A stretch of DNA of 64,000 bases from Epithemia pelagica (taxonomy: Eukaryota > Protista > Bacillariophyta), in NCBI GenBank assembly GCA_946965045.2, contig OX337232.1, positions 744,001 to 808,000 on the forward strand, given 5' to 3'. Position numbers and translations under genes: made by a program. This document shows positions 1-48,910 of the stretch, one piece after another. Numbering within the stretch: the first letter of the stretch is position 1; each line of letters opens with the position of its first letter. The notes under the pieces are model-generated. The model was not told the DNA's origin. It made no database searches and saw nothing but the letters and a program-made list of their open reading frames with translations.

Positions 1-1
1 C

Positions 2-400
2 TAAATCCTCACGAGTCAATGATGTAGTACCACTACTTGAACGATACCCCCAGTGCATCCAATCGTCAGTGGTTGAATGGTTATTGTTGTTGTTGTTGCT
101 GCTGCTGATGTCGTTTTGAGGCAGTCTCTCCATTGTACGACCGATCAAGGCCAAGCGATGGCGAAGATTGGCAATCGATTCCATGACTTGAAACAAGTGT
201 TGATCGGTTGCATACCAATCCAAGACAAATCGTTTTTCGAAGGATGTGACTGCCAATTGCAATGTCTTTTGGGTGTCTGTCGATTTGTTCTTTTGGTTGC
301 TCCTCTTTGACTGAGAGTGTGTTGGGCGACCATGAGATGGAGGGACCGGAGACGAAACTGAGCCTGGATTACTGGGAGTGGGAGCGGGTGGTACAGTCAT
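2..400 (-). CDS. Hypothetical protein, N-terminal part; runs off the left edge of the window
   Basis: ATG at 400 (minus) opens a stop-free frame to the window edge (MTVPPAPTPSNPGS...FEKRFVLDWYATDQHLFQVMESIANLRHRLALIGRTMERL). Translated by hand; absent from the ORF track because no stop lies in the window. Confidence 0.55.
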   Translation of the reverse strand, partial: MTVPPAPTPSNPGSVSSPVPPSHGRPTHSQSKRSNQKNKSTDTQKTLQLAVTSFEKRFVLDWYATDQHLFQVMESIANLRHRLALIGRTMERLPQNDISSSNNNNNNHSTTDDWMHWGYRSSSGTTSLTREDL

Positions 401-884
401 CGTCGACAAATTAGTAGAAGATCGTTTTCCGGTCAAGAGAAACTGTTGATAGGCCGCTGAATCAAAGTCCAAAGTTGCTTCCGAAAGGCCTTGCAGGCCC
501 GGTTCGCTGGATGGGTCCTTCTTCTCGTGTGACTGTAAGCTGCTAGTTGGAGAGCTGGAAGAAGGCATGTTTGTTTGTCGTTTGGATAGGCCTTGATACG
601 GTTTGTTTGTGTTGGACGTGTGTGGCAAAAGGAGTGTGGTGATTCTCTTGTGACTGTGTGGTTTGCTTTGTTCTCTAGTTTAGAAAAAGTAAATAGGGTC
701 AAAGCGTTTCCGATTTGCTTCGATGGGAAAAAGGTTTCTTGAATGAATGGGTCAATGGGTCAATTTTGAATGATGAAAATGGGGAGATGACAAAAGTCTT
801 GTGGATCAACGGAACTGGTTTGTGTTCTTGATGTGGATTCTTGTATTTTTTGTCTTGCTTTCTTCTTCGACACTTGTGTTATTA

Positions 885-1103
885 TTATTGTTGCTGAAGG
901 CGTTGTTGACGTCGTTCTTGATCTTGTTGAGCGGCAATTACTTCGGGTTTGTCAGAGGAAAAGATGTTGTGTCCTTGTCGCTTATCTCCCATCCCATTCA
1001 TGAAGGGAATGGCACACGCCACGGTAATCACCACGGCCGTTCCAAAAGCTTTCCAACCCACACTGCCGGGAAGACGATTCACCCACTGATCCACCAAACT
1101 CAT
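885..1103 (-). CDS. Small (72 aa) single-pass membrane protein
   Basis: ATG start, one hydrophobic segment (WKAFGTAVVITVACAIPFM), then a charged tail (GHNIFSSDKPE...QQRLQQQ). Family not recognised. Confidence 0.55.
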   Translation of the reverse strand: MSLVDQWVNRLPGSVGWKAFGTAVVITVACAIPFMNGMGDKRQGHNIFSSDKPEVIAAQQDQERRQQRLQQQ

Positions 1104-1810
1104 ATGTGTGTGTGTGTGCGTGGACTTGTAGAGGATGCTTTGATAGTATTAATTTGGAACCTATGCGGTTTGGAATCCACCGGTGAGAAATAGGTTACAG
1201 ATGAATAATAATATAATCAACAATTGTCTTCTCTTGTCGACAACCTGAGCATCAATGCAATGATCGTCGGTTTGCTGATCTGGTGGCGGCGAATCCACAT
1301 GATGTGATGATGACGCGTCTGTAAGTCTATCCGTGGATCGCGCAAACATTTTGTGCCATTCAGATGGATACGGATTACGGAATACGGAGACTAACAATAT
1401 ATTGGAGTAGCAACGATACTCTATGTGCTTTCCCCTTCCAACTCGTACAAGTCTAGAGTCTACTGGATGAGAAAAAGGATGTGGTGGGTTTGGCTCTGAA
1501 ACGAGCAGAAATAGTCGTCGTTGTCGCCGTCAATCTAACGAGGTAGGACAACCGTACAGTCTTTGTAAGCAACGCCGTATCTGTCCGCTTAGCCAAGGCA
1601 ACCACCATGCAGCTGATTGGTTTCCACGGCATAGAAATAATGGCACCTTGTTCTCACGCAGCAACCGTTTCCCATCCCTCGCGTTCCACCATAAATTTCT
1701 TACATATGTAAACATCAGTATCCTGATCTATACTATCGGACGACCGATCCAGTACCAGCCTTCCCAATAGCCGTTTGTGGTTGAAGCGAGGGACCATTTT
1801 TTTGCTGTTG

Positions 1811-1993
1811 TTACAGAAATGCCCCTTCCTCGTCCACATCCTTGTCGTTCTGGTCGATCGTACCGCCTAGAGTTTTGTCGTCATCCTCTCGATCCTCATC
1901 ATCATCCAACCACAAATCCATGGCAGTCTCATATTCCTCATCACCATCGAGACCCAGTTGGGACCAAAAGTCACGACTTGCGTCCTCTGACTC

Positions 1994-2031
<38 letters not shown>

Positions 2032-4645
2032 CGTCGTCGTGTGTATCATTCTTGTCGTTGTTGTCTGACTTGTGAATGCGGCTCCTCATACCTCCTGCTG
2101 AAAAACTGCTTTCAAAACTACTTTGTCGACTTGATTCTTCCTCTCGAGCCTGTTTGGATTGGCCCCATGGGGCGGCTCCTCCTCCTCCTCCATGTGGACG
2201 ACGACGACGACGTCCATCACCACGAGTAGTAGCAGAACTACTCGGAGTCGTCCTCCTCCTCCTTTTGGTCGTCAACGGGGGCAGTGGTTGAACCAAGGCG
2301 GCTTGCAAGGCATCGTACAAGCGACGACAGGGAATCCATTGCAATCCCGAGGGAACCTTCTGTTGTTGTTGATACTGTTGGGAAGCGGGGGGTGTAATGA
2401 CTCGGGAAAATCCCAATCGATGGGCTTCCACCAATCGCTTGTCCAAGGCCGCCACGGGTCGCAATTCTCCCAACAAGCCCACTTCCCCGACCAAGACGGT
2501 ATCGGCACGAACCGGAATTTGCACAAAACTACTCACCAACGCCACAGCTGTGGCCAAATCTGTGGCATGTTGGTTCTTATTATTTGGACGACGACCAGCA
2601 GTGTCTTGTTGTTCGGTAGTCGACACGGCGACATTGACATAAATATCATGATGACGAGACAAGGACCAGGGCAATCCACATCGTTTTTGCAAGACACCCA
2701 ACAAGAGGAGCAATCGTGCGGGGGCCATGCCTTGGACGGTTCGTCGACCCACAGCAGCAGCAGCACCACCACCACCGCCCGTGAGGGGTGTCACCAAGGC
2801 TTGAACTTCGACGGCCATGGCTCGCATTCCTTCCATGACCATGGCAATGGCACAGCCTTCCGCGTCCTCGGATTCGGACCGCGACGATACAAACAAGGTG
2901 GAGGGATCCGAAACGGGTCGCAATCGACCCGTTGTCATTTCATACATGCCGACGGCATCTTGCGATCCAAATCGATTTTTACTGGCTCGTAACAGTCGCA
3001 CTTGATGAATGGTACTACTACTGGTCCCATAGTGTTCCAAATACAAGACGGCATCGACCATGTGTTCGACGGTACGGGGACCCGCAACAGTGCCAGATTT
3101 GGTCACGTGACCGACCAAGACAATGGGAATGCCCGTGGATTTGGCCAAGCGTAACAGCAGGGCGACACATTCCCGAACTTGGGTAATACTACCGGCCGAT
3201 CCCGAGGCCGAATGACATACCATGGTTTGAATGGAATCCAAAATCACCACGGACGGTGGCAAGGCTTGCCACACAAAAGACGACGACGATGACAAGAAGG
3301 ACGGGTCCTCCTCGTCCTGCTCGGATTCCGACCACTGGTTCTTCTTTTCCGTGTTCTTCTTCTTCTTTTTTGACAATTGCTGTTGTTGCTCGTAGTGTTG
3401 CAAGGATTGAATGACCTTGGCACACAGGGTATCGACAACGGTTTCGGACCAGAGCCACAATTCGGACGAGTCCAGTCCCAAGCGATGCGCCCGGGCGGCA
3501 ATTTGTTCGGGACTCTCTTCGCCCGAACAATACCAGACGGGCCCCAGTGGTGGAGGATGGTTGTTGTTAGTAGTAGTAGTGTGGTTGTGGTTTGGTTTTG
3601 AAACAGTAGTCGTGGCGGGTCCCATGCCAATGCCCGGTGTGGGTTGCGAACTGTAGGTCGCAATGGCCCCGGCCATTTGCAACAAGAGGGTTGATTTGCC
3701 CACACCCGGGTCGCCTCCAATCAACACGAGAGATCCCGGTACCAAGCCTCCCCCCAAGACGGTAGTGAATTCGTCATCATGGGGAATGGGAATGCGTTCT
3801 CGACGACGACGAGGACGATTGGAGGATGCTTCTTCTCCCGTGTCGTCGTCGTCGGTTTGTTGGGGATACAAATCGGTAATGCGGACCGGCCTGCCGTGTG
3901 GCATCCAGGACGAAGAAGAAGAAGAAGCATCCGCCAGGACACCATCGAGCCAAGAAGTCGGCAAAGGACCGGCCGCTGGTCCAAACACGGGCCATCCTGC
4001 ACCATTACCACTCGTCATGGTTGTCGCATCCCGTACGACGGCATGTTCTTGAAGGGTATTCCATTGATGACACGTGGGACATTTGCCTCGCCATTGCACA
4101 AATTCACTTCCACAATTGCTGCACAAATAAACGGTAGCAAGGGACGACGAAGATTTGCCCATGGCCTTGCGTTGATTGGGACTCGACCGTCCGCGGCCAT
4201 AGCCAAAGGACGAAATACTACTACTACTACTACTGGCCGAAGTAGAAAGGGGATGGCGAAATTGCGACACGTCCACTTCCGGAGGATCGTCGTCGTCGTC
4301 ATACTCGTCGTTTTCGTCATGAGGAGTGTCTCGGTAGAGACACAAGGTAGTCGTTTTCGTCGAACTACGAGGGGAGCAGAAATTTTTCGCCCATCCAATC
4401 CTCCGAGGAGAAAGGACCATGGTGGTTGGACCAAACGTCGATGGATTCCTCGTCGTCATGGGACGAGGAGGAGACCATGCTGCCGCTTGCACCGCAAACA
4501 CGGTCGGCTGCCACCACCACCACCAACCCAAGAGCGACGACAGTTGCAACGCAAGGACCAGAGATTGAACGACTTCCCCATTTTTGGAATTCTGATTGCT
4601 TCGACCAAAAGTATCCATCCTGGAACAAGGACTTATCAGTGTCAT
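1811..4645 (-). CDS. radA: DNA repair protein RadA/Sms, probably plastid-targeted
   Basis: C4 zinc finger (CSNCG...CPTC), Walker A GGDPGVGKST, Walker B VILDSIQT, GHVTK...AGPRTVEHMVD, KNRFG motif and a Lon-like C-terminal domain (GEVGLLGELRPV). Hydrophobic N-terminal stretch followed by AAAW-SPP resembles a diatom bipartite targeting signal. True start codon uncertain. Confidence 0.93.
4399..4560 (+). repeat. Direct repeat copy A (RadA 5' coding segment); partner at 7384-7542
   Basis: tcctccgaggagaaaggacc...cagttgcaacgcaaggacca recurs at 7384-7542 with a few substitutions and three 3-nt indels. Confidence 0.93.
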
Positions 4646-7383
4646 CCTGACGGCGTTGTCGTTGTGGCTGTGTTATTTGGTGGTTCTCCTGATCTTATTC
4701 CTTGGGGGTATCTTTTCCGACCGTTACTACTCAGCGGTGGGATCCTTTGAATGGTCATAAATCCTCTTTTCCATTGGCGGATACTTTCGATCGAGAGTAC
4801 AAGGCCGCAGTACCCCGAGCGGGGTAGGATTACCCTAGAGTAGCGTTAGCTAGCAACCCTCGAAAGGGGGAAGGCGAACGGCGATGCATACTACAATATA
4901 CTCGCCAGAGAGTGTGCGGCCATGGACTCCCGGACGCAAAATCTGTCGACTCGCATCACAACAAAATCCAAACGGTGCACATTCGGGATTGACGGTTGAC
5001 AGAATACAAGAACTTAAGGAGCGAGACGTAGCTTGTGACAATATAATGTTTCGAGACGGCATTGGGATGGCGGATCAACATGGCGACGGTGACAAAAAGA
5101 AGAAAACGTTTCTTCTCACAGTGGGAACTGATGCCTTTCAAGAACACGACTTGCACAATTGGATGAGGGGGAAACCATACTTGAAGGAACTTGTGGCTGG
5201 AGAGTCGATTGATGAAGCAGAAAACACCATGGACTCTGATCAAAGACAAATATTCGCCGCAATCTCGGATGAAGAGATGCAAGAGAAATTTCGAGAAATG
5301 CTGCAGCGGACGAATCAAAACAGGAGGCTAGCTGAGAAGCTCCATAGCATACAAGCCACAACACGTGAGATCCAAACACAACTGCGTATGCTCTCTGGTC
5401 TTAGCCAAGCAGAGGGCAGCTTGAGCACTTCCACCAGGGAAACTTCTTCGAAGATGCCAAAATTTTCCTGGGAATCACGCTTACCGCTTTCCATTGCCGA
5501 GAACAAGAGTTTATACTCTCCTGTCCTAGAAAACCCCGGGTCTATCGATAGCATCTTTGAAAAAATTACGGAGTTGGGGAACGAAGAAAATTCTCAGGCA
5601 GAAGGTCGACTCCGGAAGCTCGCGGCTCGCCTTGACTCCTATTTGTCGAAATGCCATGTGTTGAAAAAGAGCGACAAGTCCTATGCGGAGAAAATCCGAA
5701 AGTCCATTTCACAGATGGAAGAATATGCTCTTGTGGAGCATGGCAACCAAGGACTGATAAAAAGTGGCAGGGCTGTTATGCCAGGTCCCTACTCACAAGA
5801 AAAAGAGGGTATTCAACCCTTTCTGCAGGCGTTGATGCAGTTGGTTGGTAAATGCCTTGAACCTCCCCAGATGAACATATCAAGTCCTGTGAAATCCTCC
5901 GTTCGGAAAGAGGTCCCTATTCTTCAAACCCAATACCGCTCCAAGCGGTTTATTGATTTTATGCTTTCGAAAGATGGTGTCCTTTTTGACGACATGATAA
6001 AGATTCCTATGGAAACCAAGCCTGGTTGGCGGAAAGGAAGAAATTCACTGTCACTACTCGATGAGGGTAGAGACCAGGTCCTATCTCATTTAGCACAACA
6101 ATTGTTCCTCGGCTTCAACTTTGCTGGAATCGGTGTTCCATGCCATGCAACAGGACTGGTTGCAAACATGGCTGGAGTAAGAGTAATCTATTTACGTTAC
6201 GAGAAAGTGGGTACCGAGGAAGCTAAATTGAGACTTTTCCAGTCCCATCTCCTACCTCTTATGAGTGCTGCGAATTTTGATAAGTGGGTCAAGGATGTCC
6301 CGCAAAAGGGAAGAGATGACTTGAGAAAGGAACTATACGGTGAGAACGGCAACGAGGGTGTTGAAGGTAATTTACCAAAAGGTCTCTGTCTTCTATTCAA
6401 CTTGATGCTACAAAAGAGTGACCATCTGCAAGGGTTCTCCACGAACCTGGAGAGCAAAGAACTTGGTACTCAACTTGGCTCAGGCAGTACGGCTGTAGTT
6501 TTCCGTCGACTGAATTCTGACAAAGAGCCTGACGGTGTAGTAAAAGTATCTCGGTACGGAGTCAAACAAGATATTGAACATGAACTGGAAATTCTTCAAG
6601 AGCTCACTACAACCTCATCAATGAACAAGCACATACCAAGAATCATTGACGAAAAATCGAAATCCATTCGGGTTCAAATTGGATCAGTTTGGGCAGACCT
6701 GCCAGCGATCCGAACGAAACCTGAAGGAACCCCGGCTTCGCATCATTTTTCGCAGGCTCCAGTAGATACTCATGTCCACCTCGCTGCAGTTCTGAATGGA
6801 GTAGGCTGTGCTTTATTCCACATGCATTCGAAAAATATCTTTCATCTTGACGTTTCTCCCAAAAATATTGTGTTTGTTGATCAAGAGGCTGTTCTGATTG
6901 ATTATTCGCTTGCATACAAACGTCCGAGCGGTAAAAACAACGGTCGTGGCAAAAATCTTGTCAAGGGCTTCTTTGGAACACCCAACTACGCGCATCGGGA
7001 AATATTCAATGCTTATCTCAAGGGACAGCAACACTGGAAACCTGCTGAAAAGCATGATGAGGCAGGGCTTGGTTTCGCTTTGGCTTTTTTTGCTGCTGGC
7101 TCTGTGCGCATGTGGTCAGTTGACCACTATCCGATATACAAGAGCAATCCGACACCGAGTGAGGCACAAGAACTGAAAAAAACAATGGACAGGCGCGTTG
7201 AGGCGGCAACAGAAGTGGTTGATAAGAGAGTTGGAACTCATGAGCTCAATGAGCGCATCAAGCGCCTTATTTTGAAGGACAAGGAGTAAAACTGTAACAC
7301 ACTACTCTGGTTACGGCATTTCTTTTGGATTTTAGTACGTCCTTGGTATCTTGTGGGATAGCGGCAATGACCCATCTATAAAC
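4561..7383 (+). mobile_element. Putative inserted nuclease-kinase cassette bounded by duplicated RadA sequence
   Basis: A 2.8-kb unique segment carrying one gene lies exactly between the two direct repeats. No terminal inverted repeats or transposase seen, so mobility is an inference. Confidence 0.4.
4884..7289 (+). CDS. PD-(D/E)xK-like nuclease + Ser/Thr kinase fusion (CR/Crinkler-like architecture), intact 801 aa
   Basis: Kinase motifs LGSGSTAVV, VVKVS, EHELEIL, HLDVSPKN, IDYS, GTPNYAHRE, HDEAG. Upstream nuclease-like motifs EKEGIQPF...FIDF...IPMETK...EGRDQVLSHL are shared with the paralogue at 45.2-47.6 kb. Confidence 0.75.
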   Translation: MHTTIYSPESVRPWTPGRKICRLASQQNPNGAHSGLTVDRIQELKERDVACDNIMFRDGIGMADQHGDGDKKKKTFLLTVGTDAFQEHDLHNWMRGKPYLKELVAGESIDEAENTMDSDQRQIFAAISDEEMQEKFREMLQRTNQNRRLAEKLHSIQATTREIQTQLRMLSGLSQAEGSLSTSTRETSSKMPKFSWESRLPLSIAENKSLYSPVLENPGSIDSIFEKITELGNEENSQAEGRLRKLAARLDSYLSKCHVLKKSDKSYAEKIRKSISQMEEYALVEHGNQGLIKSGRAVMPGPYSQEKEGIQPFLQALMQLVGKCLEPPQMNISSPVKSSVRKEVPILQTQYRSKRFIDFMLSKDGVLFDDMIKIPMETKPGWRKGRNSLSLLDEGRDQVLSHLAQQLFLGFNFAGIGVPCHATGLVANMAGVRVIYLRYEKVGTEEAKLRLFQSHLLPLMSAANFDKWVKDVPQKGRDDLRKELYGENGNEGVEGNLPKGLCLLFNLMLQKSDHLQGFSTNLESKELGTQLGSGSTAVVFRRLNSDKEPDGVVKVSRYGVKQDIEHELEILQELTTTSSMNKHIPRIIDEKSKSIRVQIGSVWADLPAIRTKPEGTPASHHFSQAPVDTHVHLAAVLNGVGCALFHMHSKNIFHLDVSPKNIVFVDQEAVLIDYSLAYKRPSGKNNGRGKNLVKGFFGTPNYAHREIFNAYLKGQQHWKPAEKHDEAGLGFALAFFAAGSVRMWSVDHYPIYKSNPTPSEAQELKKTMDRRVEAATEVVDKRVGTHELNERIKRLILKDKE

Positions 7384-7576
7384 TCCTCCTAGGAGAAAGG
7401 ACCATTGTGGTCTTTGGACCAAACGTCGATGGATTCGTCGTCATGGGACGAGGAGGAGACCATGCCGCCGCTTGCACCGCAAACACGGTCGGCTGCCACC
7501 ACCACCAACACAAGAGCGACGACAGTTGCAACGCAAGGACCACCCAATACTTGAAACGAATTGGCTCCATCGTCAT
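7384..7576 (-). pseudogene. Truncated duplicate of the RadA N-terminus with a signal-peptide-like start
   Basis: MTMEPIRFKYWVVLALQLSSLLCWWWWQPTVFAVQAAAWSPPRPMTT matches the RadA N-terminus and stops after SPRRSL (stop at 7376). Confidence 0.85.
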
Positions 7577-8129
7577 GGAAGGATAGACGCACAGTGGAAC
7601 TGGCTTGTTGGTGAAAAGGGTGCGACCTAATGGAGACTAGCCTCTAGAGCTGACTCACAAGGCCCTACGTCACCTTGCCCAACCAGCCTCACACTTGGAC
7701 TGACGCACTACTTGCATATCTTTTAGGAACGTGGTGACTGTGTGGCGATCGGTCATTTGCCGGCTGCTCGGTAGGCTCGCTGACTGGGTATTACTGGTTG
7801 GGCAGTAAGGGCCATTGTCGAGTTTTCGAGCTCGGTGACATGGACTGACTGCGAAACGTTCGTCGATTTATAAATTCTGGTAGGGCCTTATGCCACGGGC
7901 AATTCTACCACCACACAGGTTGCTGGATTCTCCTTTTCTCTTTCTTTCTGTCTCTCTCTCTTTTTTATTGTTGTTTTTCGAAGAAGTGACAACTCGGTAT
8001 AGAGAAAGGCATTGTTTGCCTCATTCAGTCATTCATTCTCTCTCATGGATTGTATTCTTTCAAAACTGTGTCATTAGTAGCAACCGGGACACTCTCTCTT
8101 CACCCACAACTCATCTTGTATAACCAACC

Positions 8130-11100
8130 ATGGAACAAACCACTGCTAGTACGACCCGTCCTTCTTCCAACCATGGCGGCGGCTACTCGTTGGACAATCT
8201 TACCACTTCTACGCCTCGTCGAGGTTCCGTGGACAAGGAACGTCCCCCTTCGGACACAATTGTGGTGAATCATCCACCACCAACAGCAGGTAGTCGCAAC
8301 AGCAACAGCAGCAACAAAAAGGCCTCGTCGTCGTCCAATAATGCACAATATTGTTATCGTCAACCCATATCGCAGTTTCGATCTACACCCACCACTTCCA
8401 CTGTCAAACAACATGCTCCTCCCACCACCACCCGGACCACAACAACGACTCGGGAGGAGGAACCGCGACCTTCGCCGTACCAGAACATGGAGTACGAATC
8501 GGCCGAAGAGTTCACCAATGCCCTTCGAGGACGACAACGCAACAACAAGAACAAGCAAGAAGAACCCTCGGTGGCATCCACCAAAACTCGGAGTACATCC
8601 TCATCTTCAACCGAATTCTTTCAATATGACAATATCATTGAAGAAGAAGAGGACGAAGTAGATGAAGAAGTTCCCAGCAGCGCTAGCACTCGACGACGAC
8701 GCAAACGAAGCAAATCCAAACCAACCACCCGCAAGAAAAAGAGTCGTCGAGGACGTCGCAAAGATCGCAATCGCGACACCGACAACACGGACGAAGAAAA
8801 TCCTTATAGTACCGACCACAGGCCCATGACCGCCGTTCCGGAAGAAGGCGATTCTTGTATCGAAGAGTTGGACGAGGAAACCAAAACCTTGTTTCGTCGG
8901 GCGGCCGATTTCATTCAACCCAGTTCCCTCTTTCGCTTGATTGTCCACTTGTATGGGGAACGCAAACTCGTGGTCTTTTTTTGGTTGCACTTTGTGGCCA
9001 CCATGGCCATTTGGGTCCATTTTGGCTTGATCAAATGGGACGAACAACGCGCCACGGTACCCGACGGGGCACCCAATTATTGGTGGAAACGCATTGCCCC
9101 ACCCTTGGAATTTGGCTCCATGCATGCCATTTTGTTTCAAATGGCCCTCCTGCCCCTCACCATGTCTCGCTTTTCCATTGCGGCCCTGTCCGATTCCCTG
9201 GTCGATCGCTTTATTCCCATGAATCGCATGTTGCGCATTCACATTCATCTCGGATACACCATGGTACGTCCTTTGTTGTTGTTTTTGTTGTTGTCGTCGG
9301 ATATAGTACGATACCAATCAACCAACACAACAACTACACAACCACTGTTTTGTGGGAACCAAAAAGGCCTGTGTGGAAACATACACACACACACGAGACA
9401 CGTGTGAGTTGGGAATCTTTAATCTCTGACACTGTTCATGCGTGTTTTGTTATGTTTTGTTTTGTTTTGGGCGAAATTGGATGATCATGATGATGATTTA
9501 TATAGGTGGGCATTGTCTTTCTGGCCGTCGTCTTTTTCTTTCTCTTTTTTGGTCTCTTGTGCAGTCGGGGAGAAGAAGCCTTTTGTGACAAGTTCACGTC
9601 GGAAATCATGATTACCGGCTATCTCATTTTGGGATTTTTGCTCCTCATTGGTGGTACCTCGTACGTGCGGCACAAGATCCCCTATGAAGTCTTTTATGTG
9701 GTACGACCAAAACAAACAGAAAAACAAACAAAGACATGTTTGGTCAAAAGAGCTGTAAAAACTCTACGGCCTTTTGGAGCGTTTCAATGGACTTACCGTT
9801 TCTTCTTTTCTCGGTTTTGCGGTATATTTGTTGTTGTCATAGATTCATCATGCCGTATTTCTCTTGTACTTGGTCACGATTCTACACACCTTGGACAAGG
9901 TAGAGCGTGACGATGGTCGCAAACGGAGTCAAACCTTCAAGTGGTTCTCCTCGACGCTCTTGTATTATGCCTGTGACCGCATTGCCATGCATCTCAATCA
10001 CCGATACCGCGCCAAGGTCCTGTCGTCCGTGGCTGTGGAAGGGGCCGATAGTTCCCGCATGCTCTTGGTCAAATTGCGACGACCGGCCTTGTTTCAATTC
10101 AAACCGGGCCAATACGCCTTTTTAAAAGTTCCCGCCATTGATCATCATTGGCATCCCTTTTCCATTGCGTCCGGTCCCTCGTCTCGCAATCTCGAGTTTT
10201 ATATTGAAGTCTTTGGTCCCGCCACCTGGACCGGACAACTCTGGACCCTGCTCGGTGGCGACGATGTCGATGGTTTGAATCCTTCTGAACAGGTCGACAT
10301 GGAAGTCATGGGGCCCTATGGAACCAGCCTGGGTGCTAGCACGGGAGACTACTCGCATGCCTTGGCCATTGGAGCTGGAACAGGTACGTGTGAAGAGGAA
10401 CGACTTCCACAAATGTGGATCCAAAAAACCACATTGTGTATTGTAGTGTGTCACATGAGTCTCATTTTGAAACTGCCCTTTTGTTTCCTCTCTCTCTTTT
10501 GTGTAGGAATTGTCCCCGTGTCGGCCATGTTTCAAGAACATGTCCGAAATGTTCTTCGTCTCTCTCCCGACGTTCATTTTCGCATTGTGGAGGAGGCACG
10601 AAAGCATCGGGCCGAATACGAATTTGCCGAAGAAGAACGCAAGGGTTCCGTGGCCAAAAAGATTGCCAGTCAGTGTTGTGGACCATCCCACCAGAGGAGA
10701 GGAGGACTTGATGACCAAGCCTTTGGACAAACCCGAAAGGATTCACGGCGCCACACCATTATGAGTACCTTGACCGAAGTGTCCAACGAAGCACTGCAAT
10801 CCGTATCAGATAGCTCGTTCAATGCTGCCATTCCATCGAGATCGACCAATGATTTGAAACGGGCGGCCTTTCAGGCGACCAAGTCAATCTACGGTGTGGT
10901 TTTTATGGGCTTTTTGACTGTGTATGCCGCCACAGTGCTCAGTCTCTCACTGGTAAGTTCTTCCGACCGTAGGGAGTTAGACACTGGCATTTTCGATCCC
11001 CTCTAACATGACCCTTGCGTGCTGTTTCGTAGTCTTGGAACACAATCCCAATCGATCTGTACAAAGGAATGACAGGCTTTTTACAGGTGGTGACATGGAT

Positions 11101-11956
11101 TTTTGAGATTCTGTTTGCCTGGACAGCCGTTTGTGTCTGGGATGGAAACCAATTCCTGGCATATATTGACATTGTGTTGTGCATTGTTTGTATCCCAGCA
11201 AATGTGTCGTGGTACAATGAATACGACCGGAACAATCGCCTTGGTGCAACGTCTACCACGTTGTTAGCACTCTTGCTGGGATACATGACGGCTCGTCTCT
11301 GGGTCAAGGCAGTGGGACGTCGTCACACCTCCTGGCGTCATGGATCGGGCGAATCGTGTGCCGGGACCTTGGAACGCATGGAGATTGTATGGGTCGCGCG
11401 GTCCGCCCCTCTAGTGGCCAAGATTTTGCCCGACATTGATCAACTCTGGAACGAGGTTGTCAAAAAGTGGGGACTCAAGGATGCCTTGCATGTATGCCGC
11501 GTCTCCGTCTACTGTACCGACAAGAACCGATTCGCGGTCGGAGCCTTGCGATCCGAAATCTCCAAAACGTCTCTGTACAAACATGGGTTTGTGCACTTTG
11601 CTCGACCTGATTTCGAGGAGGTTATCCAAAATCACACCTTGGAGCTGATTGACTTGAGCAACAGTCGGTCCTCCAGTTCGTTGCTGGCCTTTTGTGGATC
11701 CCCCATCTTGGCGCGAACGCTGCATAGATTCAAGTTGTCGAACGACATGATGAAGGCAATTGTTGGTCACAAGGAACATCAGATGGACTTTGTCAGTGAG
11801 AGCTATTGTGGTGTGAGATCGTCGTCGGCCAAGGGATCCACAACAACCATCCACAATCTCGATTTTCTCAACGCGGACAAGGCAAAACTCAAGCCCAAGG
11901 GTGCTTACTCCGTGGGTCAATCGAGCCGCCGCGTCATTACCTATGATCGCCGATAA
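8130..11956 (+). CDS. NADPH oxidase / ferric reductase-like flavocytochrome (5 exons: 8130-9263, 9506-9700, 9843-10383, 10507-10952, 11033-11956)
   Basis: Heme-ligating His pairs (RIHIHLGY; IHHAVF...ILHTLD), FAD motif HWHPFSIAS, MGPYG, NADPH motif IGAGTG/IVP, late WVARS and AFCGSP motifs. GT-AG introns join the ORF pieces in frame. Confidence 0.88.
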
Positions 11957-12043
11957 GGGTGCTTCGAATCCCCTTCGTTTCAAGAGGAAGCACATGACCA
12001 ATGATGGACTTGAAAACGATTACGCCATCCTTAAACTATGCTC

Positions 12044-12234
12044 CATATCGCTCTCATTCCATTGTGTCAACCTCATCCCTCCTGGGAGCTGTTTAGTTCA
12101 TAATTAGTGTTGTTTTGAACGGGTAGTACTCTTTAAACATATCACTTTCGTTCCATTATGTCAACCTCATCCCTGCTGAGAGCTGTTTAGTGCATAATTA
12201 CTATTGTTTTGAACGGGTTGTACTCTTTAAACAT
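12044..12234. repeat. Two-copy 94-bp tandem duplication between convergent 3' ends
   Basis: catatc...ttccatt(g/a)tgtcaacctcatccct...gagctgtttagt...ttgttttgaacgggt(a/t)gtactctttaaacat occurs at 12044 and 12138. Confidence 0.9.
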
Positions 12235-12278
12235 GGTGTTAGTTAGGAATTCTCTGGTTTACTACTTTACGATTCTTT

Positions 12279-15200
12279 CTATCTGAAACCTCCAGGAGGA
12301 GGGGGTGGTGGCATTCCGACGCCTTGAGGCGGTGGTGGCGGCATAGCACCCCGAGGAGGAGGTGGCATAGCACCCTGAGGCGGAGGTGGTGGCATACCGC
12401 CGCCCTGGGGAGGAGGTGGTGGCATGGCTCCATGAGGTGGCGGGGGAGCCGTTTGACCAAAGGACGGCCGATGTGCCGACGGAACACCACCCATGGGTGG
12501 TGGTGGCCCTGCACCCGGAGGTGGTGGACCAGGAGGTCCTGACATGCTAGGAGGTGGAGGTCCCATTGTGGACGGAGGCGGTGGTGCTCCATATCCACTG
12601 GGAGGACCAGGCGGTCCACCAGAAGGACCGCCCGCAAAGGTTGGTGGAGGAGGGCCACCAGGAGGTCCAGGAGGTCCAGGTGGGGGAGGACCTCTCATTC
12701 CTCCCGGGGGTCCAGGAGGTGGCTGCACATTCATGGGTGGTGGAGGGCCACCAGGAACACCGGGGGGAGGGGGGCGCATTCCTCCCATACCTGTCGGAGG
12801 ACGCATGGGTTGACCGGGGGCACCAGGAGGAGCCGGTGGACCAGGCGGTGCCATGCCACCAGGAGGACCGGGAGGGGGCATACCACCCTTGGCCCGTGGC
12901 GCTCCACCGGGTCCTGGTGGTCCGGCCCCCGCCGAGGCATTGGGATTGTTCACAAACTTCATAAATTCCGCGTAACTGTGTGTGCCACCTTGGAAGGAAG
13001 CTCGATCTTCCACCATGAACCAATAGAATCGTGCTTCGGCCGCACCGTCACCCTCTCGAATAACATGAATCTTGGGAGAGGCTTGTCCGGTATACTTGGT
13101 CTCGTGCAAGGCCGACACAATGGATCCCACACGGCTGGCAAAGTCATCGCCGGACAATTGGACCTGTACCTGGGAGGGATCCACGTCGTCGAGGGAATGG
13201 ACCCCAAACAAGGCACTGAGCATGTTCAAATCGGCCCCACTGCCCACATACAAAAACATTTCCACGCCCGTATCCAACAAAAAGATTCCATTGCTCGATA
13301 ACCGTTCCACGCTCAAGTTCACGGCGGGTGGAAGTTGGATCTTGTTCTGTCCGGCCACGGTTTCTGGGTCAATCTCTTGACCATTGGTGGTAGCGGGGTG
13401 TCCGGCCTGTGGTCCCATTTCATGCAAGGCAAACATGCGAGGATAAATAAAGTGTTTCATGTCCGTGACAAAAAGTTCATTCAACAAATAATAGGCCTGT
13501 ACACGTTGATCGGGATGAACGTCGGTACCTCCTCGAAAGGCCACATTTTTCATGGTAGCCAAGGTATACAAGGGCAACAACTTGAGGTTGTCCGGAATGG
13601 GTTTTTCTTCGGGACCCTCACCTCCTCCTCCTGCTTGGGGCGGAACCGTGTATCCCGACACGGTCCGCTTATCTCCTCCCTTGGCGGCCCGAATAATCTC
13701 CACGCAGACTTGTTGCAATCGCATTCGAGCATTGTCGAGACCGGATTTGAGCGCCACTTCAATGGCTTGTTTGGCCAACAAGGACGTACAGGCATCGGCA
13801 TTGACCGAGGCCATGACTTCCGACATGAGAGCCGATACGGGCAAAGCTTGTGTCATGACCCGGATGCGTCGTTCTCCTTCGCTGCTCGTGTACAACAAGG
13901 CGGCCTGAATGGTCACATGAGACGAGGCAATATTGGGATCGTCATAGGCCAAATCAAACCCAAAGACGGATTCGGAATTGCAATTGGGCAAGGCCATGAG
14001 ATCTGTCCCACGAATAAAGAAATTACCATAAAAGTTGGTAATCCGCATGCCCTTGGTACAACGGATTCGCATGACACTTTCGAAACAGGTCTTCTGCGTC
14101 AAAATGGACTTGAGCTGCGCTTCAAACCGAGGTCCGTCTTGATCCTTGCGGAACATGGGGTAGGAATGCATGGACCCCGCCGTATACTTGGCCAAATCGC
14201 CCAGGGCGGCCAAATCCATGTATTGGTAGGGGAACAAGAACAAATCGACACTAATTTGTTGACGACTGAATTCAATCGCCGTATCCTTGTACCAGCTAAA
14301 GCCCACTTCGGGTTTGAGCAAGGTAACTTCCTTGGGTGTGCCCATAATGGCCGGTTGTTCGCGGGGTTTGAGGGCGCCATCGCCCAAATTGGGTGGCGTG
14401 GATTGAAAGACACACATTTTGCCACCAATCGCCTTGACGACGGTAAAGGCCGCCTTGAGGGCGGGTCCCAAACAGGATCGACCCTCCACCGGTCGTTTGG
14501 CAAACATTTCCGGCAAATTGTCCAAAAAGGCTTCGACAATGTCTCGAGACTCGTGCAGGTTGACCAGCAAATTTTCCGGCAAGGGAACAAACAATTCCTT
14601 GAGATCCGAAACCACCAGCATTTGCGGATTGGCCAAATCGGAATCCAAATTGTAATAGTGCACGGCAGTGTCAAAGGTAATGAAACCAATTTTGGTGCGA
14701 TTCCGCCCCGGCAAGGTATCCAAACTCGCCTTGATGGCCGCCGAGACGGAATGAAGCAAGCCACTTTGGACGGCCAAGGCACTCACGTCAATGACAAAAA
14801 AGTAGCAGGGTTCTTGGGGAGGTCGGACCATGTATTCGGCGGGGGCAATAAATTCCACCACACCGCGACTCAATTCGGGTCGATCAAAGCGATCTTGTCG
14901 CAATCCCATATCGTCCAAATGACAAAAGTAGGCCGAAGGACAATCGTTCATTTGGGCACAAATATTACACCGCCAACGTCGACCGTGATCGGACCAGGTG
15001 ACAAAGGCATTGATATAGGTCCGACACCGTTTGCATCGAATAATGCCGGCCGTTCCGGGTTGGACCGTGGGAATGGCATCGTCCGCCGCCGCTTCTTCGG
15101 ATTCCGGTGCCAGGGGACGCAAGACGGCACCAAAGGGAACCTTGGACAAGGCGGCCAGGGAAGACGTTTGAGGCAAAAGTGCCGCAGTCAAGCGAAAGAG

Positions 15201-44919: not shown

Positions 44920-47900
44920 CTACGGAGCTAACTACGTAGACTATTTCATGTCATTGCGGCCAAATTAATGGCAGTGATTTTACCGCGACTTGGCCAACAA
45001 AACCTACTCCTAGGACACTGTTCCAATTAGTCGATGGTTGCTTAAAAATCGTAAAACGACTAAGACTATCAAGTTACGACTATCAAGTACGAAAGCAATC
45101 GCCAACATGTCATTGTGGGGCCATTCCTTGCTGTCTTTGTCCAATCCTCAGTTCGACGGGCGAAGAGAAACTCAGAAAGATTTATATGTGAGATTTTGGC
45201 TCAACTTACGAGCACCCAAGTAGCAAAGGTTTTCCGTCGATTATGCAGTGTCAAGAATTGATCGGGCCCAGTCCAAGAATACTGTATTGCGCTCCCTGGG
45301 CTTAAACTTCAAGTTCAAGGCTTTCTCGGTTTTCTCGCGACGATCTACAAAGCCCCTATCATGGGGTTTTCTCTCATAGAACCCTTGCCAAGGAATCGGC
45401 ACACCTGTGTTCAAAGCACAAATGGTAAACAACAAAGATGCGGTATCATGGTCCGGCTTGGGAGTCCAAGCCGTCGTGTTGCCCTTTTGGTACACTTCTC
45501 GATGGGCAAAGGCAAGGCTGCCTCGAAAACCCATGGCTTTTTTGCCAGCCCCATAAACCGAGCAACCCCAGTCAATGAGCACGAAATCTTCACTGCTTTG
45601 GTCAAAAATGATATTGCGAGCACAGACATCCAAATGGAAGACATTCCGTTCATGTGCAAAGTTCAACGCAGACTGGACATCTGTGTAGAGACCCTGAAGT
45701 GCTCCGTATGAAGCTTGCCATTCACGAGCGATCCTTTTGGTGAGAACTTGAAGGCAGGGACGTTGATCGTAGTTCCTCGAATCCTGTAGCAGATGCTTCC
45801 AAAGTCTTTAAGAACGGGAATCGACGGTGGGCGGGAGGCAGGGCTATCGTTTAGAGCCCTCAGAGCTCTCAGCTCCCTTTCAATGTGTTGAACCTCCCCA
45901 ACGACGGAAGATTTCACTACGAAGTTATCATGCTTGGTTCCTCCATTTTCCTCCACCTTTCCTTGGTACACAATCCCATGGGTTCCATATCCAATGACAT
46001 CATGAAGCTCTAGCCGTTTTGCCTGGGCAACTTGTGTAGATTGATTGTGCATATGGTAGCTGGCATTTGCTGACGAGTCTCCCGCAAAGAACTGCAACCC
46101 AAGAACTTTGTCGTCCGAGCAAACCAGTCTGAACAGCTCCTGCATCCCGACCGGTACAGACGTATTGTCGGCAGGAAACGGACAAGAAGCATTATCCGCT
46201 AGATAGGTTTGGTCGCATTCTTTTGGGACAAACTTGTTCATGGCAACCTCCGAAACCAAGGGGAGAATTCCAGATCGCTCGACATCCAGGGACACGTCGC
46301 CAGTTTCCATTCCTGACAAGGTCATTGTGATCACCTCCAAATAAACTGGTGTCATGGCCAGAGCAATGGACTTGAGATTACTACCCACTCCACCAAGATT
46401 GAAGGCAACCAGAGTCCTCTTTGCCAGATGACCAATGCATTGCTTCACGGCCTCCATACGCGTCTCTGCGGGGGTCTTGCGCCCGCAGGAAACGTTTTTG
46501 GCTTCCACAGGTATTGACATTTCATGAGCCAGCAGATAAGGAGTGAAGGCCATGAGCGGATTGACTTCATAATCCACGAATTGTTTGGTACCAGATCGAC
46601 CCCTTTTCGGAATCAAGCGCTGGTTGCGCACATCCGATCGAACCGCCGGCTCCAGTGCGTACATGGCACCTTCCGGAGACCCTGCCGCCACCGCTGCTGG
46701 TGCCACCGCGACATGTTGCTGGTTTCTGGCTTTTTCGTCTGCCGTTTTCTCTGCAGTGCCAAGGAGTGACAGGGTTCGAAGCAGACACGCGGGGATTGGC
46801 TGCACCGCTTTCTTCTCCCCTGTCGCGTAGGATGGAACCGTGCACTTGGTTCTCTTGCCTACCCGCTGCGTGTGCCATCCGAGAATGTGACGGACAGTCT
46901 TGCTGATTTGTGCGTCTGTTGGTTCCTCGTTGATAGTTGCCTGTTCCATGGTATCATTCCAAAACGAGGCAAACTGGAGCAAATTTGCCGGTGGGGGATC
47001 TAGTTTCGGAGGGGCTTGAAACGCGCCAAGATGTTTTTGTGCTACCTGCTGCGCAGGTCCAGGACTGTCCATGTAAACACCCCTCATCATGTCCTTATAA
47101 TGATCTTCAGGGCATTCCTCTTGCGATGCAATGACGGTTGATTGGATCTCTGTTTTGTTGGCATACGCAGCCATGGTCTTGAGGTCGTTGTACACTTGTG
47201 AGAATTTCTCCAAGGTAGCGTTTAGTGGGCGCACAATGCCACGATACAGAGCTCTATGCAGAGAATTAAAATCTTCGACATGCAGGTTATTGAAATCATC
47301 ACTTGACCAACCTTGCAATTTCTGGATATTCAAGTTGGGGAATCGAGCTTTGAGACATTGTAGATTATCACTCGAGAGGAACGTCTCCAGACTTTCGCTT
47401 TGTCCTTTTTCCAATTCATTTCCCTCAGCGGCAAATCCAACCTCGTCAAGGTAACGGTCGACTTGCGCAGAAATGGTTTCGAGTTCAGTCATGGTTCCCT
47501 TTGGGTTTTTGGCATGGAAGGTATGCCAGTGGCGAGTCACGGAATCCTCGTCGGCCGAGTCCGGCGAGGGAGTTTCTGGTTCGCCATGGCCGAGAGGATT
47601 GCGTTTGCGCTTCATGCTGTTACGACTCGTCATGGTGGCGGCTCTCGTGTCCCGTTCTTTCACAGCGTGTGTGGTGGAGACCACACCAAGACCAATGTGC
47701 CATGGACCTCCGCGCTTGAGCGTTCTCCTCAAAACCCGAGATGTTTTATGACGAACGGCGGACAGATGGACTGCTCCGATCTCCGATCGAGGAATCAAAC
47801 TGTGGGTTTCCAGATCGTGTTTCATTTCGGACAAAGTTTGGGAAAATCGGTCCACTTGAGCGCGCAGGAATCTCGGTCCTTGTTGTTCCCTTGGTTTCTT

Positions 47901-48220
47901 CTTTGTCATGGAAGGTATATGCCAGTAGTGGCGAGTCAAGTCGGAGCGAGTTTCTTCGTCTTGTTCGCGATCGTTGAGAGGATAGCGTTGGCGCTTCTTG
48001 TTGTTACGACCTGTCATGCTTATTGCTATCGTGTCGTTCTTCCCGAGTGCGTTGGAGGTGACCCGGCAAAGAAAGTAGTCACGAAAGGGAAAAAGGGAAC
48101 AGGAAATTTGTACAGAGGAAGCAGGTACTTCTCTGTTCCACAAGACGAGTGACTCGGTTTCTCCGAACAACAACCCAACATCCCATCCGCCATCCCTCCA
48201 CCTCCGACTCTGAAACCTTG
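44920..48220 (-). repeat. Right arm of the ~3.4-kb inverted duplication
   Basis: Reverse-complement match to 30070-33510. Confidence 0.92.
45241..47633 (-). pseudogene. PD-(D/E)xK-like nuclease + kinase gene with one frameshift (frame stays open upstream to 48359)
   Basis: EKKAVQPI...FVDYE...IPVEAK...EAVKQCIGHL nuclease-like motifs followed by a kinase. A 1-bp deletion near 45700 (gcactt vs gcaactt) splits ORFs 45663-48359 and 45241-45666; it could be a sequencing error. Confidence 0.75.
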
Positions 48221-48910
48221 AAGACATTATTTGACAATGACAAGGAGAGATGGCAATGGCATGGTATACCGTCGGTGACAGTGACTTTTGTTGTGTGCGC
48301 GCGCAGCGAGCTTCTGGAAGCGCACCTCCATTGGAAGTGGACGCATGCTCCTTTACCATAGTATTTGGAACGTGTACCGAGTGGCGGACGCTCCGCAGTT
48401 CGACTCTCTGTTATTCTATACTTTCGTTCTACACTACCTAGAAATAACACGGACTGCGGGAATCGATTGGACGAAGCGTTGAACGGATGGAACCGTTATT
48501 ATGTGGTGTCCGATCGTCCGTCGTGCGCACAAGAGCAACTCTCCACAGACAAACAGGAAATATGCGTCGAAGAAGAAAAACCTGGAAGAACATGATGAAG
48601 TAGATGAATCGGATGGTGGAAAGAGAGTGAAAAAGGCAACCCAAGAAAACCAACTTTGTCTCGGATTGATATTCCACTACTCTAGAGTGCAACAGCATCA
48701 GGGATCGTCGTTCCAGATCGAGACAAACAACAACGACCGCAAAACCGCAGTGCACACACACGCCACACGTATTCCGGGAGCAACAACAACACACACGACG
48801 AGAGACGTGTGTGTCGTCACCGACTACGGTCGTTCCTTGGAACATTATTGACTTGCAAGTGCGTGTTTTTCCTTCTGAAGAAAAAGCCACTATTCGTACT
48901 ACCTATAGAA

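Follow-up and report, generated by a model that had tools for sequence, protein, structure and literature searches.

The window analysed here, 64,000 nucleotides of contig OX337232.1 from the diatom Epithemia pelagica, carries on its forward strand an open reading frame for a protein of 801 aa (P0001), in which a predicted nuclease domain is followed by a protein kinase in one chain (Table 1). That this frame is intact had been claimed from the letters alone, and the claim was borne out with exactly the same boundaries. Relatives of 789-920 aa can be aligned with P0001 over the full length. Its gene occupies a segment of 2.8 kb between two direct repeats of 160 bp, both consisting of RadA 5' coding sequence. 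The same window harbors a paralogue of a different subfamily together with an inverted duplicate of the latter.

Table 1. Features of the nuclease-kinase locus and of related copies in the window (positions of the window).
Feature	Position	Strand	Remarks
Direct repeat R1, part of RadA 5' coding region	4399..4560	.	93-98% identical to R2, spacing 2982-2988
Upstream non-coding module	4703..4883	+	76-80% identical to L003:8589-8842 and L003:12422-12516; common to closest paralogue
Nuclease-kinase fusion ORF, P0001	4884..7289	+	intact, 801 aa
N-terminal region, aa 1-284	4884..5735	+	predicted long helices; no known domain or signal peptide
Motif L-S-G-L-S-Q-A-E-G, aa 170-178	5391..5417	+	S-Q site behind amphipathic helix
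Predicted PD-(D/E)xK nuclease domain, aa 285-520	5736..6443	+	AF2 model, VIA-align matches
E306, opens core helix alpha1	5799..5801	+	at least 90% conserved; model helix 22-39
D358 on strand beta2, 'D' of PD	5955..5957	+	invariant in 58 full-length relatives; model strand 71-78
E377-T-K379, (D/E)xK triad on strand beta3	6012..6020	+	at least 90% conserved; model strand 90-94
Q398-x-x-x-H402 on helix alpha2, family consensus QxLxHLAK	6075..6089	+	Q398 at least 90% conserved; model helix 104-127
Protein kinase domain, aa 521-801	6444..7286	+	Pfam Pkinase and catalytic residues
Direct repeat R2, displaced RadA 5' coding copy	7384..7542	.	minus-strand frame runs on to ATG at 7577
Remnant, presumed former RadA start and upstream sequence	7543..7612	-	contiguous with single R and RadA 5' body in L009:1042-1512
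Inverted duplicate of 45-kb paralogue	30680..33131	+	split over 4 or more reading frames; 90-97% identity
Different-subfamily paralogue	45241..48359	-	single kinase frameshift about 45700-45725; 69% identical to P0007

Judged by its residues, the C-terminal part of P0001 is a protein kinase of Ser/Thr type with a full catalytic set and an active appearance. Pfam Pkinase (PF00069) matches aa 527-717 with an E-value of 7.8e-12 and 45.6 bits, the cut-off being 31.7. All motifs previously listed for it (Gly loop, HxD-x-x-x-K-N, DYS) were found again, the complete set consisting of G532 and G534 of the Gly loop, K554, E567, H654-L-D656-x-x-x-K-N661 and D673-Y-S, which occupies the DFG position and keeps its Asp. 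Among 58 full-length relatives, K554, E567 and D656 are invariant, while H654, N661 and D673 are conserved at 90% or more.

The preceding domain is less readily recognized: hmmscan assigned it to nothing in Pfam, and its profile matched none of the PDB sequences. The AF2 model of aa 285-520, built on an 80-sequence alignment, reached pLDDT 90 and pTM 0.86 and displays the topology alpha-beta-beta-beta-alpha-beta (helix 22-39, strands 55-62, 71-78 and 90-94, helix 104-127, strand 136-143). The best VIA-align match is BpuSI (Z 11.1, rmsd 3.2, 145 aa), followed by HsdR (Z 8.7) and DrdV (Z 8.5); TT1808, Hjc, Can2 and NucC are matched as well, and of the 50 chains in the VIA-align list, 48 belong to nucleases, to proteins resembling them or to mitoribosomal proteins. 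At Z of 5 or more, nearly every match is a nuclease or similar to one. Residues E306, E377, K379 and Q398 are conserved at 90% or more and D358 is invariant (58-80 divergent relatives), E377 lying inside the third strand and K379 directly behind it. Further conserved positions are G417, which is invariant, and Q311 and R355, at 90% or more, in the 58 full-length relatives of about 20-39% identity. The sequence-only reading had proposed a PD-(D/E)xK fold from the spacing E...D...ExK...Q, and it had named a missing REase core, or D/ExK residues that vary across the family, as observations that would speak against it. Both were looked for; instead, the model places these residues on the canonical elements of a well-predicted core that resembles nucleases in structure, and they are conserved at 90% or more. 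According to the model, aa 285-520 are thus a PD-(D/E)xK nuclease domain of HsdR-N/BpuSI type. Both the nuclease and the kinase activity of P0001 are predicted from residues and fold.

REase folds do not have to be catalytic. Foldseek against PDB returned only weak matches, with mitoribosomal chains on top and also BsaXI, SduA, MGME1, Cas4 and TnsA, and the mitoribosomal chains 3j7y_5 and 7a5f_s3, which we take to be mL37/mL65, rank high in VIA-align too (Z 8.4 and 7.5). P0001 might accordingly be imagined as an ordinary signalling kinase with a non-catalytic REase-like module for scaffolding or binding. We regard this as quite unlikely: conservation of E...D...ExK...Q at 90% or more, at an overall identity of 20-39%, is unexpected for a mere scaffold, and the broken copies and the allelic pN/pS of at least 1 described below are unlike a housekeeping kinase.

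The N-terminal 284 residues gave nothing significant in Pfam. A full-length AF2 model shows aa 101-179 as helical, at a confidence too low for use (4-sequence alignment, pLDDT 40). Among relatives, this region ranges in length from 0 to about 570 aa. The comparison with variable CR (Crinkler) headers, drawn earlier from the letters, holds in so far as both length and sequence vary; the region is not header-like, and the majority of the 58 full-length relatives have a recognizable L-S-G-L-S-Q-A-E motif. Neither the Crinkler header PF20147 nor any other Pfam domain is present N-terminal to the nuclease in P0001 and 143 relatives, and none of the 58 full-length relatives has LFLAK, LFLA, LYLA or HVLV within its first 200 residues. 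By inspection, the N-terminus of P0001 is hydrophilic and has no signal-peptide-like hydrophobic stretch. With PF20147, LxLFLAK, HVLV and a signal stretch all lacking, a Crinkler/CR header was rejected for the family, and membership of P0001 among Crinkler/CR effectors, as suggested by the sequence-only reading, is not established. That P0001 would nevertheless be a true CR effector, secreted and translocated as a toxin against other organisms, appears highly improbable to us. The idea draws on the pairing of REase and kinase, which PMC5289972 gives for about one in six CR C-termini, among them that of CRN8, and on the multi-copy, fast-evolving character of the family. It is opposed by the missing N-terminal features, and by a host that looks like a free-living photosynthetic diatom.

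The search for relatives yielded 293 cluster representatives at E<=1e-3, of which 213 also pass E<=1e-10. In 60 of 79 full-length matches the nuclease domain is followed by 250-335 residues, the others looking truncated or longer, and Pkinase is present in each of the 58 full-length relatives. All named relatives come from the diatom Nitzschia inconspicua; word-indexed profile searches, which were swamped by generic kinases, added no further named relatives and gave no bridge to oomycete CRNs. These sequences indicate a large, divergent and diatom-centred family of nuclease-kinase proteins in which both putative active sites are conserved and a kinase of about 260-300 residues always stands behind the nuclease.

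The family was also said to be multi-copy, and in assembly ERZ21939226 we verified no fewer than 7 non-allelic copies, of which 3 are intact and 4 are broken. The closest paralogue of the P0001 gene (in L003) shows 76% DNA identity. The paralogue at 45-47 kb, described earlier as sharing four motifs with P0001, is indeed related: its reading frame (45663-48359, minus strand) matches P0001 over 313 residues spanning all four, with 24% identity and a BLASTP E-value of 4e-13, which is far above chance. P0007, the protein to which this paralogue is compared in Table 1, is encoded by an intact copy elsewhere in the genome. The copy at 30.7-33.1 kb represents the second arm of an inverted duplication and is more heavily broken than the 45-kb paralogue.

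Conflict-like evolution, another element of the original proposal, finds its counterpart in an allelic pN/pS of at least 1 at two loci. Between the P0001 alleles there are 8 non-synonymous substitutions and no synonymous one, compared with 9 and 17 in RadA (Fisher p 0.0027), where pN/pS is 0.17; the amino acid differences fall on positions 5, 118, 133, 155, 267, 420, 455 and 789. At a second family locus, 50 non-synonymous and 13 synonymous differences stand against a pN/pS of 0.17 in the SOUL neighbour (p 0.0023). When both loci are pooled, the excess of non-synonymous differences has p 1.2e-6. Such values fit relaxed constraint in a decaying gene equally well. The same figures, together with the broken state of 4 of the 7 verified copies, could therefore mark P0001 as a relic, that is, an open frame already free of selection, a pseudogene in waiting within a dying family. 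We hold this for rather improbable. Both alleles keep an uninterrupted frame of 801 codons along with every catalytic residue, and the family at large conserves these residues too. Further, in run X3, whose type is not recorded and whose 350-fold spread of depth between neighbouring genes is transcriptome-like, the frame is covered at depth 280 and RadA at 8.

The surroundings of the gene bear on how it came to its place. The 2.8-kb segment appears to have been inserted into the RadA 5' coding region with a putative 160-bp target duplication, and the uninterrupted arrangement (A-R-C) survives in a paralogous fragment, L009:1042-1512. For a target-site duplication, 160 bp is an atypical length. 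Neither terminal inverted repeats nor LTRs nor poly-A were found at the segment ends (4561 and 7383). Transposon ends were thus rejected, and near-identical copies, as a transposable element would have, are absent, the nearest paralogue being that of 76% identity. The allelic haplotig (L009) has the cassette and both repeats. A contig from run X3 that joins 4449 to 7435, skipping 2985 bases, was considered as a cassette-free allele and rejected as well: its loose ends exactly match L009:1041 and L009:1542, so it corresponds to the paralogous 470-bp RadA 5' fragment, which is located some 4 kb to the left of the window. Insertion polymorphism between strains, which had been suggested as a check, was looked for in two haplotigs and four public runs; no presence/absence polymorphism was seen, the gene being on both haplotigs and in all four runs.

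One can imagine a cassette that mobilizes itself. Its own nuclease would make widely staggered cuts in the target, the cassette would be copied in, and fill-in would produce the long duplications; homing-like spread to the homologous chromosome would then be conceivable. Several observations agree with this. Firstly, P0001 is the only gene between the RadA repeats, and the target exists in uninterrupted form. Secondly, the haplotigs have a synonymous divergence of 0 within the gene, compared with 0.026 in the neighbouring RadA (Poisson P about 1e-6), which is the pattern that a recent arrival of the cassette on the second haplotype would leave. Against it stand the plain segment ends and the distance of the closest paralogue, which does not indicate recent copy-and-paste. 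Moreover, flanking repeats are absent around three other copies with sufficient flank (L006, the first copy in L005, and L008), and those around the intact L007 copy belong to an ordinary tandem duplication of roughly 5 kb that is missing from haplotig L008. Haplotig divergence is also patchy across the whole locus, a portion of RadA showing 0-2 substitutions per 500 nt, for example, so that low divergence is not peculiar to the cassette. Self-mobilization is thus an unlikely account of the locus. Unlikely, too, is its extension to a novel type of selfish cassette in eukaryotes, with REase-driven insertion, long variable target duplications and copying onto the homologous chromosome. If true, it would explain both the near-zero synonymous divergence of haplotypes and the dispersed, fast-decaying copies. 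The displaced RadA 5' end illustrates how the family reshapes host genes.

The reading that we consider probable is that P0001 is an intracellular two-enzyme protein, composed of a PD-(D/E)xK nuclease and a kinase, with a likely role in genetic conflict and a control logic resembling that of Crinklers. The nuclease would cut nucleic acid, probably DNA, and represent the effector part of the protein. The kinase, helical N-terminus and S-Q motif would control it by phosphorylation, possibly autophosphorylation, or by oligomerisation. Because a header for secretion or translocation is absent, P0001 most likely acts within the diatom cell, and a role in antiviral defence, in defence against mobile DNA or as a selfish gene would suit it better than export as a toxin.

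Most of what is known of nuclease-kinase fusions concerns Crinkler effectors of plant pathogens, where they are predicted to be toxin modules, and to our knowledge almost nothing has been learned of their biochemistry. The nuclease domain described here falls into an annotation gap in Pfam and NCBI, and public annotation sees the kinase alone. Having intact members next to naturally broken ones, the family lends itself to studying how a kinase may control a PD-(D/E)xK nuclease. It is also a candidate for a component of diatom innate immunity or for a selfish element, both of which are, as far as we know, poorly understood in diatoms.

Several known systems invite comparison. Bacterial defence Ser/Thr kinases in PADLOC (PD-T4-6, MkoA, mad6, Stk2, PglW) gave weak matches to the P0001 kinase, the best with an E-value of 1.5e-7, and none to the nuclease domain; since the matches are limited to the kinase, we take them for generic kinase similarity and reject kinship.

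The nearest ESM Atlas clusters (TM 0.58 over 165-167 aa by shape, 0.92 by language model) carry PF17667 and/or DUF6826 with Pkinase. Such FunK1 (PF17667, Pkinase_fungal) and DUF6826 (PF20713) proteins occur in fungi, rotifers and haptophytes, and their resemblance to P0001 is one of structure and language model only. Membership in FunK1 was rejected, as P0001 with its 14.5 bits stays below the cut-off, which is 24.1; in relatives, PF17667 matches only with profile positions of about 274-364 (catalytic loop), and 2 of 10 inspected reach the cut-off. DUF6826 was rejected too, as hmmscan found it in 0 of 80 nuclease domains at E<=10. Nearness in shape and language model, combined with the co-occurring Pkinase, suggests to us that the proteins of these clusters are probably built on a similar nuclease-plus-kinase design.

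CR effectors such as CRN8 of Phytophthora infestans have, like P0001, a REase-fold nuclease directly before a kinase, a resemblance of architecture only, and both kinds of family are multi-copy and fast-evolving. Unlike them, P0001 has a helical N-terminus with L-S-Q-A-E in place of the Ubl/LxLFLAK header and secretion signal, and it resides in an apparently free-living diatom instead of a pathogen. The control proposed above for P0001 would be that suggested for the REase-kinase toxin modules of CR effectors such as CRN8, where the nuclease is seen as effector and the kinase as regulator; PMC5289972, summarising Zhang et al. 2016, relates that cell death by CRN8 needed the REase part and not kinase activity.

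The closest structural counterparts of the nuclease domain are the N-terminal nucleases (HSDR_N type) of type I HsdR and type IIG BpuSI and DrdV, with Z 11.1-8.5 and rmsd 3.1-3.5 over 125-145 residues. These bacterial domains are only 11-12% identical to that of P0001 and are joined to helicase or methyltransferase, not to kinase. What they have in common with the P0001 model is the alpha-beta-beta-beta-alpha-beta core, the D...ExK motif and, in the helix that comes next, a conserved Gln.

The nuclease-kinase ORF of the window is uninterrupted and encodes a product of 801 aa (P0001, to which residue numbers refer). Its residues 527-717 match Pfam Pkinase (E 7.8e-12, 45.6 bits versus a cut-off of 31.7), and the intact kinase named in the sequence-only reading is thus confirmed. 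The closest solved kinase structures, DAPK and CK2, are generic relatives only. Across 58 full-length relatives, which share about 20-39% identity with P0001, the kinase residues G534, K554, E567 and D656 never vary, and conservation is 90% or more at H654, N661 and D673.

The domain preceding the kinase escapes public annotation, and a Pfam scan of 80 such domains recognised nothing in any of them. We searched a profile of residues 285-520, built from four sequences, against 1.84 billion cluster representatives and obtained 293 proteins at E<=1e-3, of which 213 reached E<=1e-10; against PDB sequences the profile gave no match. AlphaFold2 run on an 80-sequence alignment of the domain gave a mean pLDDT of 90 and pTM of 0.86, all five models lying at 88-90. 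A run on the whole protein with only a 4-sequence alignment was uninformative (pLDDT 40). In domain numbering, the model has a helix (22-39), three strands (55-62, 71-78, 90-94), a second helix (104-127) and three further strands (136-143, 147-156, 164-169). This predicted topology is the canonical alpha-beta-beta-beta-alpha-beta core, and residues 285-520 are accordingly modelled as a PD-(D/E)xK nuclease fold, the restriction endonuclease core proposed earlier from sequence motifs.

Exhaustive comparison of the model with 48,161 PDB chains placed the BpuSI nuclease domain first (Z 11.1, rmsd 3.2, 145 residues). It was followed by an HsdR fragment (Z 8.7), DrdV (Z 8.5) and the mitoribosomal chains 3j7y_5 and 7a5f_s3 (Z 8.4 and 7.5), which we take to be mL37/mL65; lower ranks held TT1808/DUF820 proteins, Can2, SgrAI, Bse634I, BsoBI, Hjc, NucC and McrC. 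The list consists almost entirely of nucleases, nuclease-like and mitoribosomal proteins, all of them presumably of the restriction endonuclease fold. Foldseek matches were weak (best E 0.025) and also included BsaXI, SduA, MGME1, Cas4 and TnsA. In the 58 relatives D358 is invariant and at least 90% of them keep each of E306, Q311, R355, E377, K379 and Q398, so the D/ExK signature is indeed kept across the family. The family consensus of alpha2, QxLxHLAK, is reminiscent of the QxxxY motif that RecB-family and HsdR nucleases carry.

The order of the two domains is fixed. Some 250-335 residues follow the nuclease in 60 of the 79 matches that cover the whole domain, the others looking truncated or longer, and Pkinase is present in all 58 full-length members scanned. 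The region N-terminal to the nuclease is of variable length (0 to about 570 residues), and Pfam found no domain there in 143 relatives. Most members nevertheless carry a recognisable motif around L-S-G-L-S-Q-A-E (aa 170-177), with an amphipathic helix before it and a Ser/Thr-rich stretch after it; it may serve for phosphorylation (S-Q) or docking. Only three relatives have a named source, all from the diatom Nitzschia inconspicua and annotated "protein kinase domain containing". The neighbouring RadA is nearest to algal clusters, Bacillariophyta included.

Genomic features of the nuclease-kinase family and predicted catalytic residues of P0001
Feature	Position	Strand	Remark
Copy 1 (P0001)	window 4884-7289	+	intact
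Copy 2 (45-kb copy)	window 45663-48359, kinase continued in ORF 45241-45666	-	broken by frame change near 45700-45725
Copy 3 (30-kb copy)	window ~30.7-33.1 kb		broken, split over at least 4 frames
Copy 4	~20 kb to the left		broken into three ORFs; 76% DNA identity over window 4703-7282
Copy 5	ctg1346l		broken
Copy 6	ctg1346l		intact, 875 aa
Copy 7 (P0007)	ctg1338l		intact, 789 aa; 69% identical to the 45-kb copy
Inverted duplication	window 30070-33300 and 45075-48220		3.4 kb, 90-97% identity
Inserted segment	window 4561-7383
Direct repeats	window 4399-4560 and 7384-7542		93-98% identical, spacing 2982-2988
Present RadA start	ATG 4645	-	within inserted segment
Former RadA start	ATG 7577	-	beside distal repeat
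RadA paralogous fragment	L009:1042-1512		470 bp, 85-92% identity, ~4 kb left of window
Upstream module	window 4703-4883; L003:8589-8842; L003:12422-12516		~100-180 bp, non-coding
L-S-G-L-S-Q-A-E region	window 5391-5417		aa 170-178
Length-change hot spot	window 3833-4402		low-complexity N-terminal part of RadA
Depth jump	window 7575-7741		20- to 100-fold
E306			opens alpha1 of model
D358			on beta2 of model
E377-T-K379			on beta3 of model
Q398			on alpha2 of model

At least seven non-allelic copies were verified in ENA assembly ERZ21939226, where the window lies on contig ctg1340l; fragments of broken copies were analysed separately, with neither repair nor read-through. P0001 aligns with the 45-kb paralogue over 313 residues (24% identity, E 4e-13), a span that takes in all four motifs previously quoted as common to both. 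That paralogue shifts frame within its kinase and is hence not intact. It forms one arm of the inverted duplication, about 11-13 kb from the other, and the lesions differ by arm: one kinase frameshift at 45 kb and, at 30 kb, a minimum of three breaks within the N-terminal and nuclease regions. In the 45-kb copy, the ORF of 898 aa starts about 245 residues upstream of the start of P0007 (window 47634-48359, minus strand). This extension holds a second basic N-terminal motif (KKRQRYPL...TRHYWH versus MKRKRNPL...TRHWH), and therefore the 5´ end of that gene has been duplicated internally. At a second locus, haplotig ctg1346l (L007:1-8783) carries a tandem duplication of about 5 kb, comprising the nuclease-kinase gene and the 1.2 kb downstream of it; the duplicates are 91% identical and the first copy is broken. 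Haplotig ctg1181l (L008) has one copy only, so the family is structurally polymorphic within one individual. Repeats around the intact L007 copy were considered as a target duplication and rejected, since they belong to this ordinary duplication, missing from the other haplotig.

The segment that holds the gene of the window lies at the 5´ end of RadA. The repeat unit flanking its segment is part of the RadA 5´ coding region, and past the distal repeat the RadA frame runs on to its former ATG, with a signal-like hydrophobic start. The uninterrupted arrangement (upstream region, single repeat, RadA 5´ body) survives in the paralogous fragment. Because of these repeats and this fragment, we read the segment as an insertion that displaced the 5´ end of RadA and was accompanied by an apparent target duplication of 160 bp. 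Insertion polymorphism, a check raised by the sequence-only reading, was not seen: the gene is present on both haplotigs and in all four public runs. A contig of run X3 joining 4449 to 7435 (2985 bases skipped) was read as an empty allele and rejected, as its loose ends exactly match the flanks of the L009 fragment.

No inverted repeats, long terminal repeats or poly-A were found at the segment, the part in common with its closest paralogue is limited to 4703-7282 (coding sequence and some 180 bp of upstream module), and comparable flanking repeats were not found around the other copies examined. For these reasons duplication by break repair is the economical reading of its origin. The upstream module precedes both the P0001 gene and that paralogue, and recurs about 900 bp after the latter, just before a CDPK-like gene. 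Two further features were noted near the segment. In the hot spot within RadA, two indels (122 and 254 bases) separate gene and paralogous fragment. Depth in public runs jumps immediately 5´ of the former RadA start (2,285 versus about 100 in X1; 14,896 in X4), which indicates a short high-copy repeat.

Haplotig L009 (ctg1331l) and window 1-17270 share 97.06% identity. The P0001 alleles differ at eight nucleotides, all non-synonymous (residues 5, 118, 133, 155, 267, 420, 455 and 789, none catalytic), versus 9 non-synonymous and 17 synonymous differences in adjacent RadA (pN/pS 0.17; Fisher p 0.0027). Zero synonymous divergence, with a Poisson P of ~1e-6 at the rate of RadA, would fit self-mobilisation of the segment by the encoded nuclease; haplotig divergence is, however, patchy along the whole locus and not in the cassette alone, and we regard this origin as improbable. 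At the second locus the alleles show 50 non-synonymous and 13 synonymous differences (pN/pS 1.09 versus 0.17 in the neighbouring SOUL gene, p 0.0023); pooling both loci gives p 1.2e-6. Relaxed constraint alone is an alternative explanation of this amino-acid excess. Taken together, long conservation of catalytic residues, short-term amino-acid excess and frequent gene death are the pattern of a conflict-related family.

None of the public runs is recorded as RNA. Contig depths of X3 over window 3400-8400 are 8 for RadA, 280 for the nuclease-kinase ORF and 2,400-5,900 for the next gene, a difference of at least 350-fold between neighbouring genes. By these depths X3 looks like a transcriptome, its run type not being on record and contigs being no proof of expression. 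Were X3 an RNA run, transcription of both the nuclease-kinase ORF and the RadA 5´ paralogous fragment would follow.

The analysis establishes the (modelled) fold, conserved active sites, fixed nuclease-kinase order, family size and copy turnover, as well as the allelic excess and an insertion flanked by an apparent duplication of its target. Beyond these, we suggest that the nuclease would cleave nucleic acid, probably DNA, under control of the kinase and the N-terminal helical/S-Q region, and that the protein may act within the cell, either in defence or as a selfish gene.

Pairing of REase and kinase is established in Crinkler/CR C-termini. According to PMC5289972 it accounts for about one sixth of them, CRN8 included, the nuclease being thought the toxic part and the kinase its regulator. 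P0001 has a like module but lacks the CR header: Pfam found no Crinkler domain in P0001 or 143 relatives, no LxLFLAK/HVLV motif was found in the first 200 residues of the 58 full-length relatives, and P0001 has no signal-like N-terminus. Assignment to a Crinkler/CR-type family, as first read, is therefore not supported. Both shape (TM 0.58 over 165-167 residues) and language-model features (0.92-0.97) point to eukaryotic proteins as the closest ESM Atlas clusters; these stem from Zoopagomycota, Rotifera, Haptophyta and Streptophyta, and carry PF17667 (FunK1), PF20713 (DUF6826) and Pkinase. This likeness is not matched at sequence level, where DUF6826 gave no match to any of the 80 nuclease domains and PF17667 matches are restricted to the catalytic-loop part of the profile, mostly under cut-off. 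PADLOC returned generic kinase matches only. On these grounds we place the gene within the REase-kinase kind, as a variant that lacks the header and is a member of neither CR nor FunK1; the kind itself was already known, and its header-less diatom variant is new.
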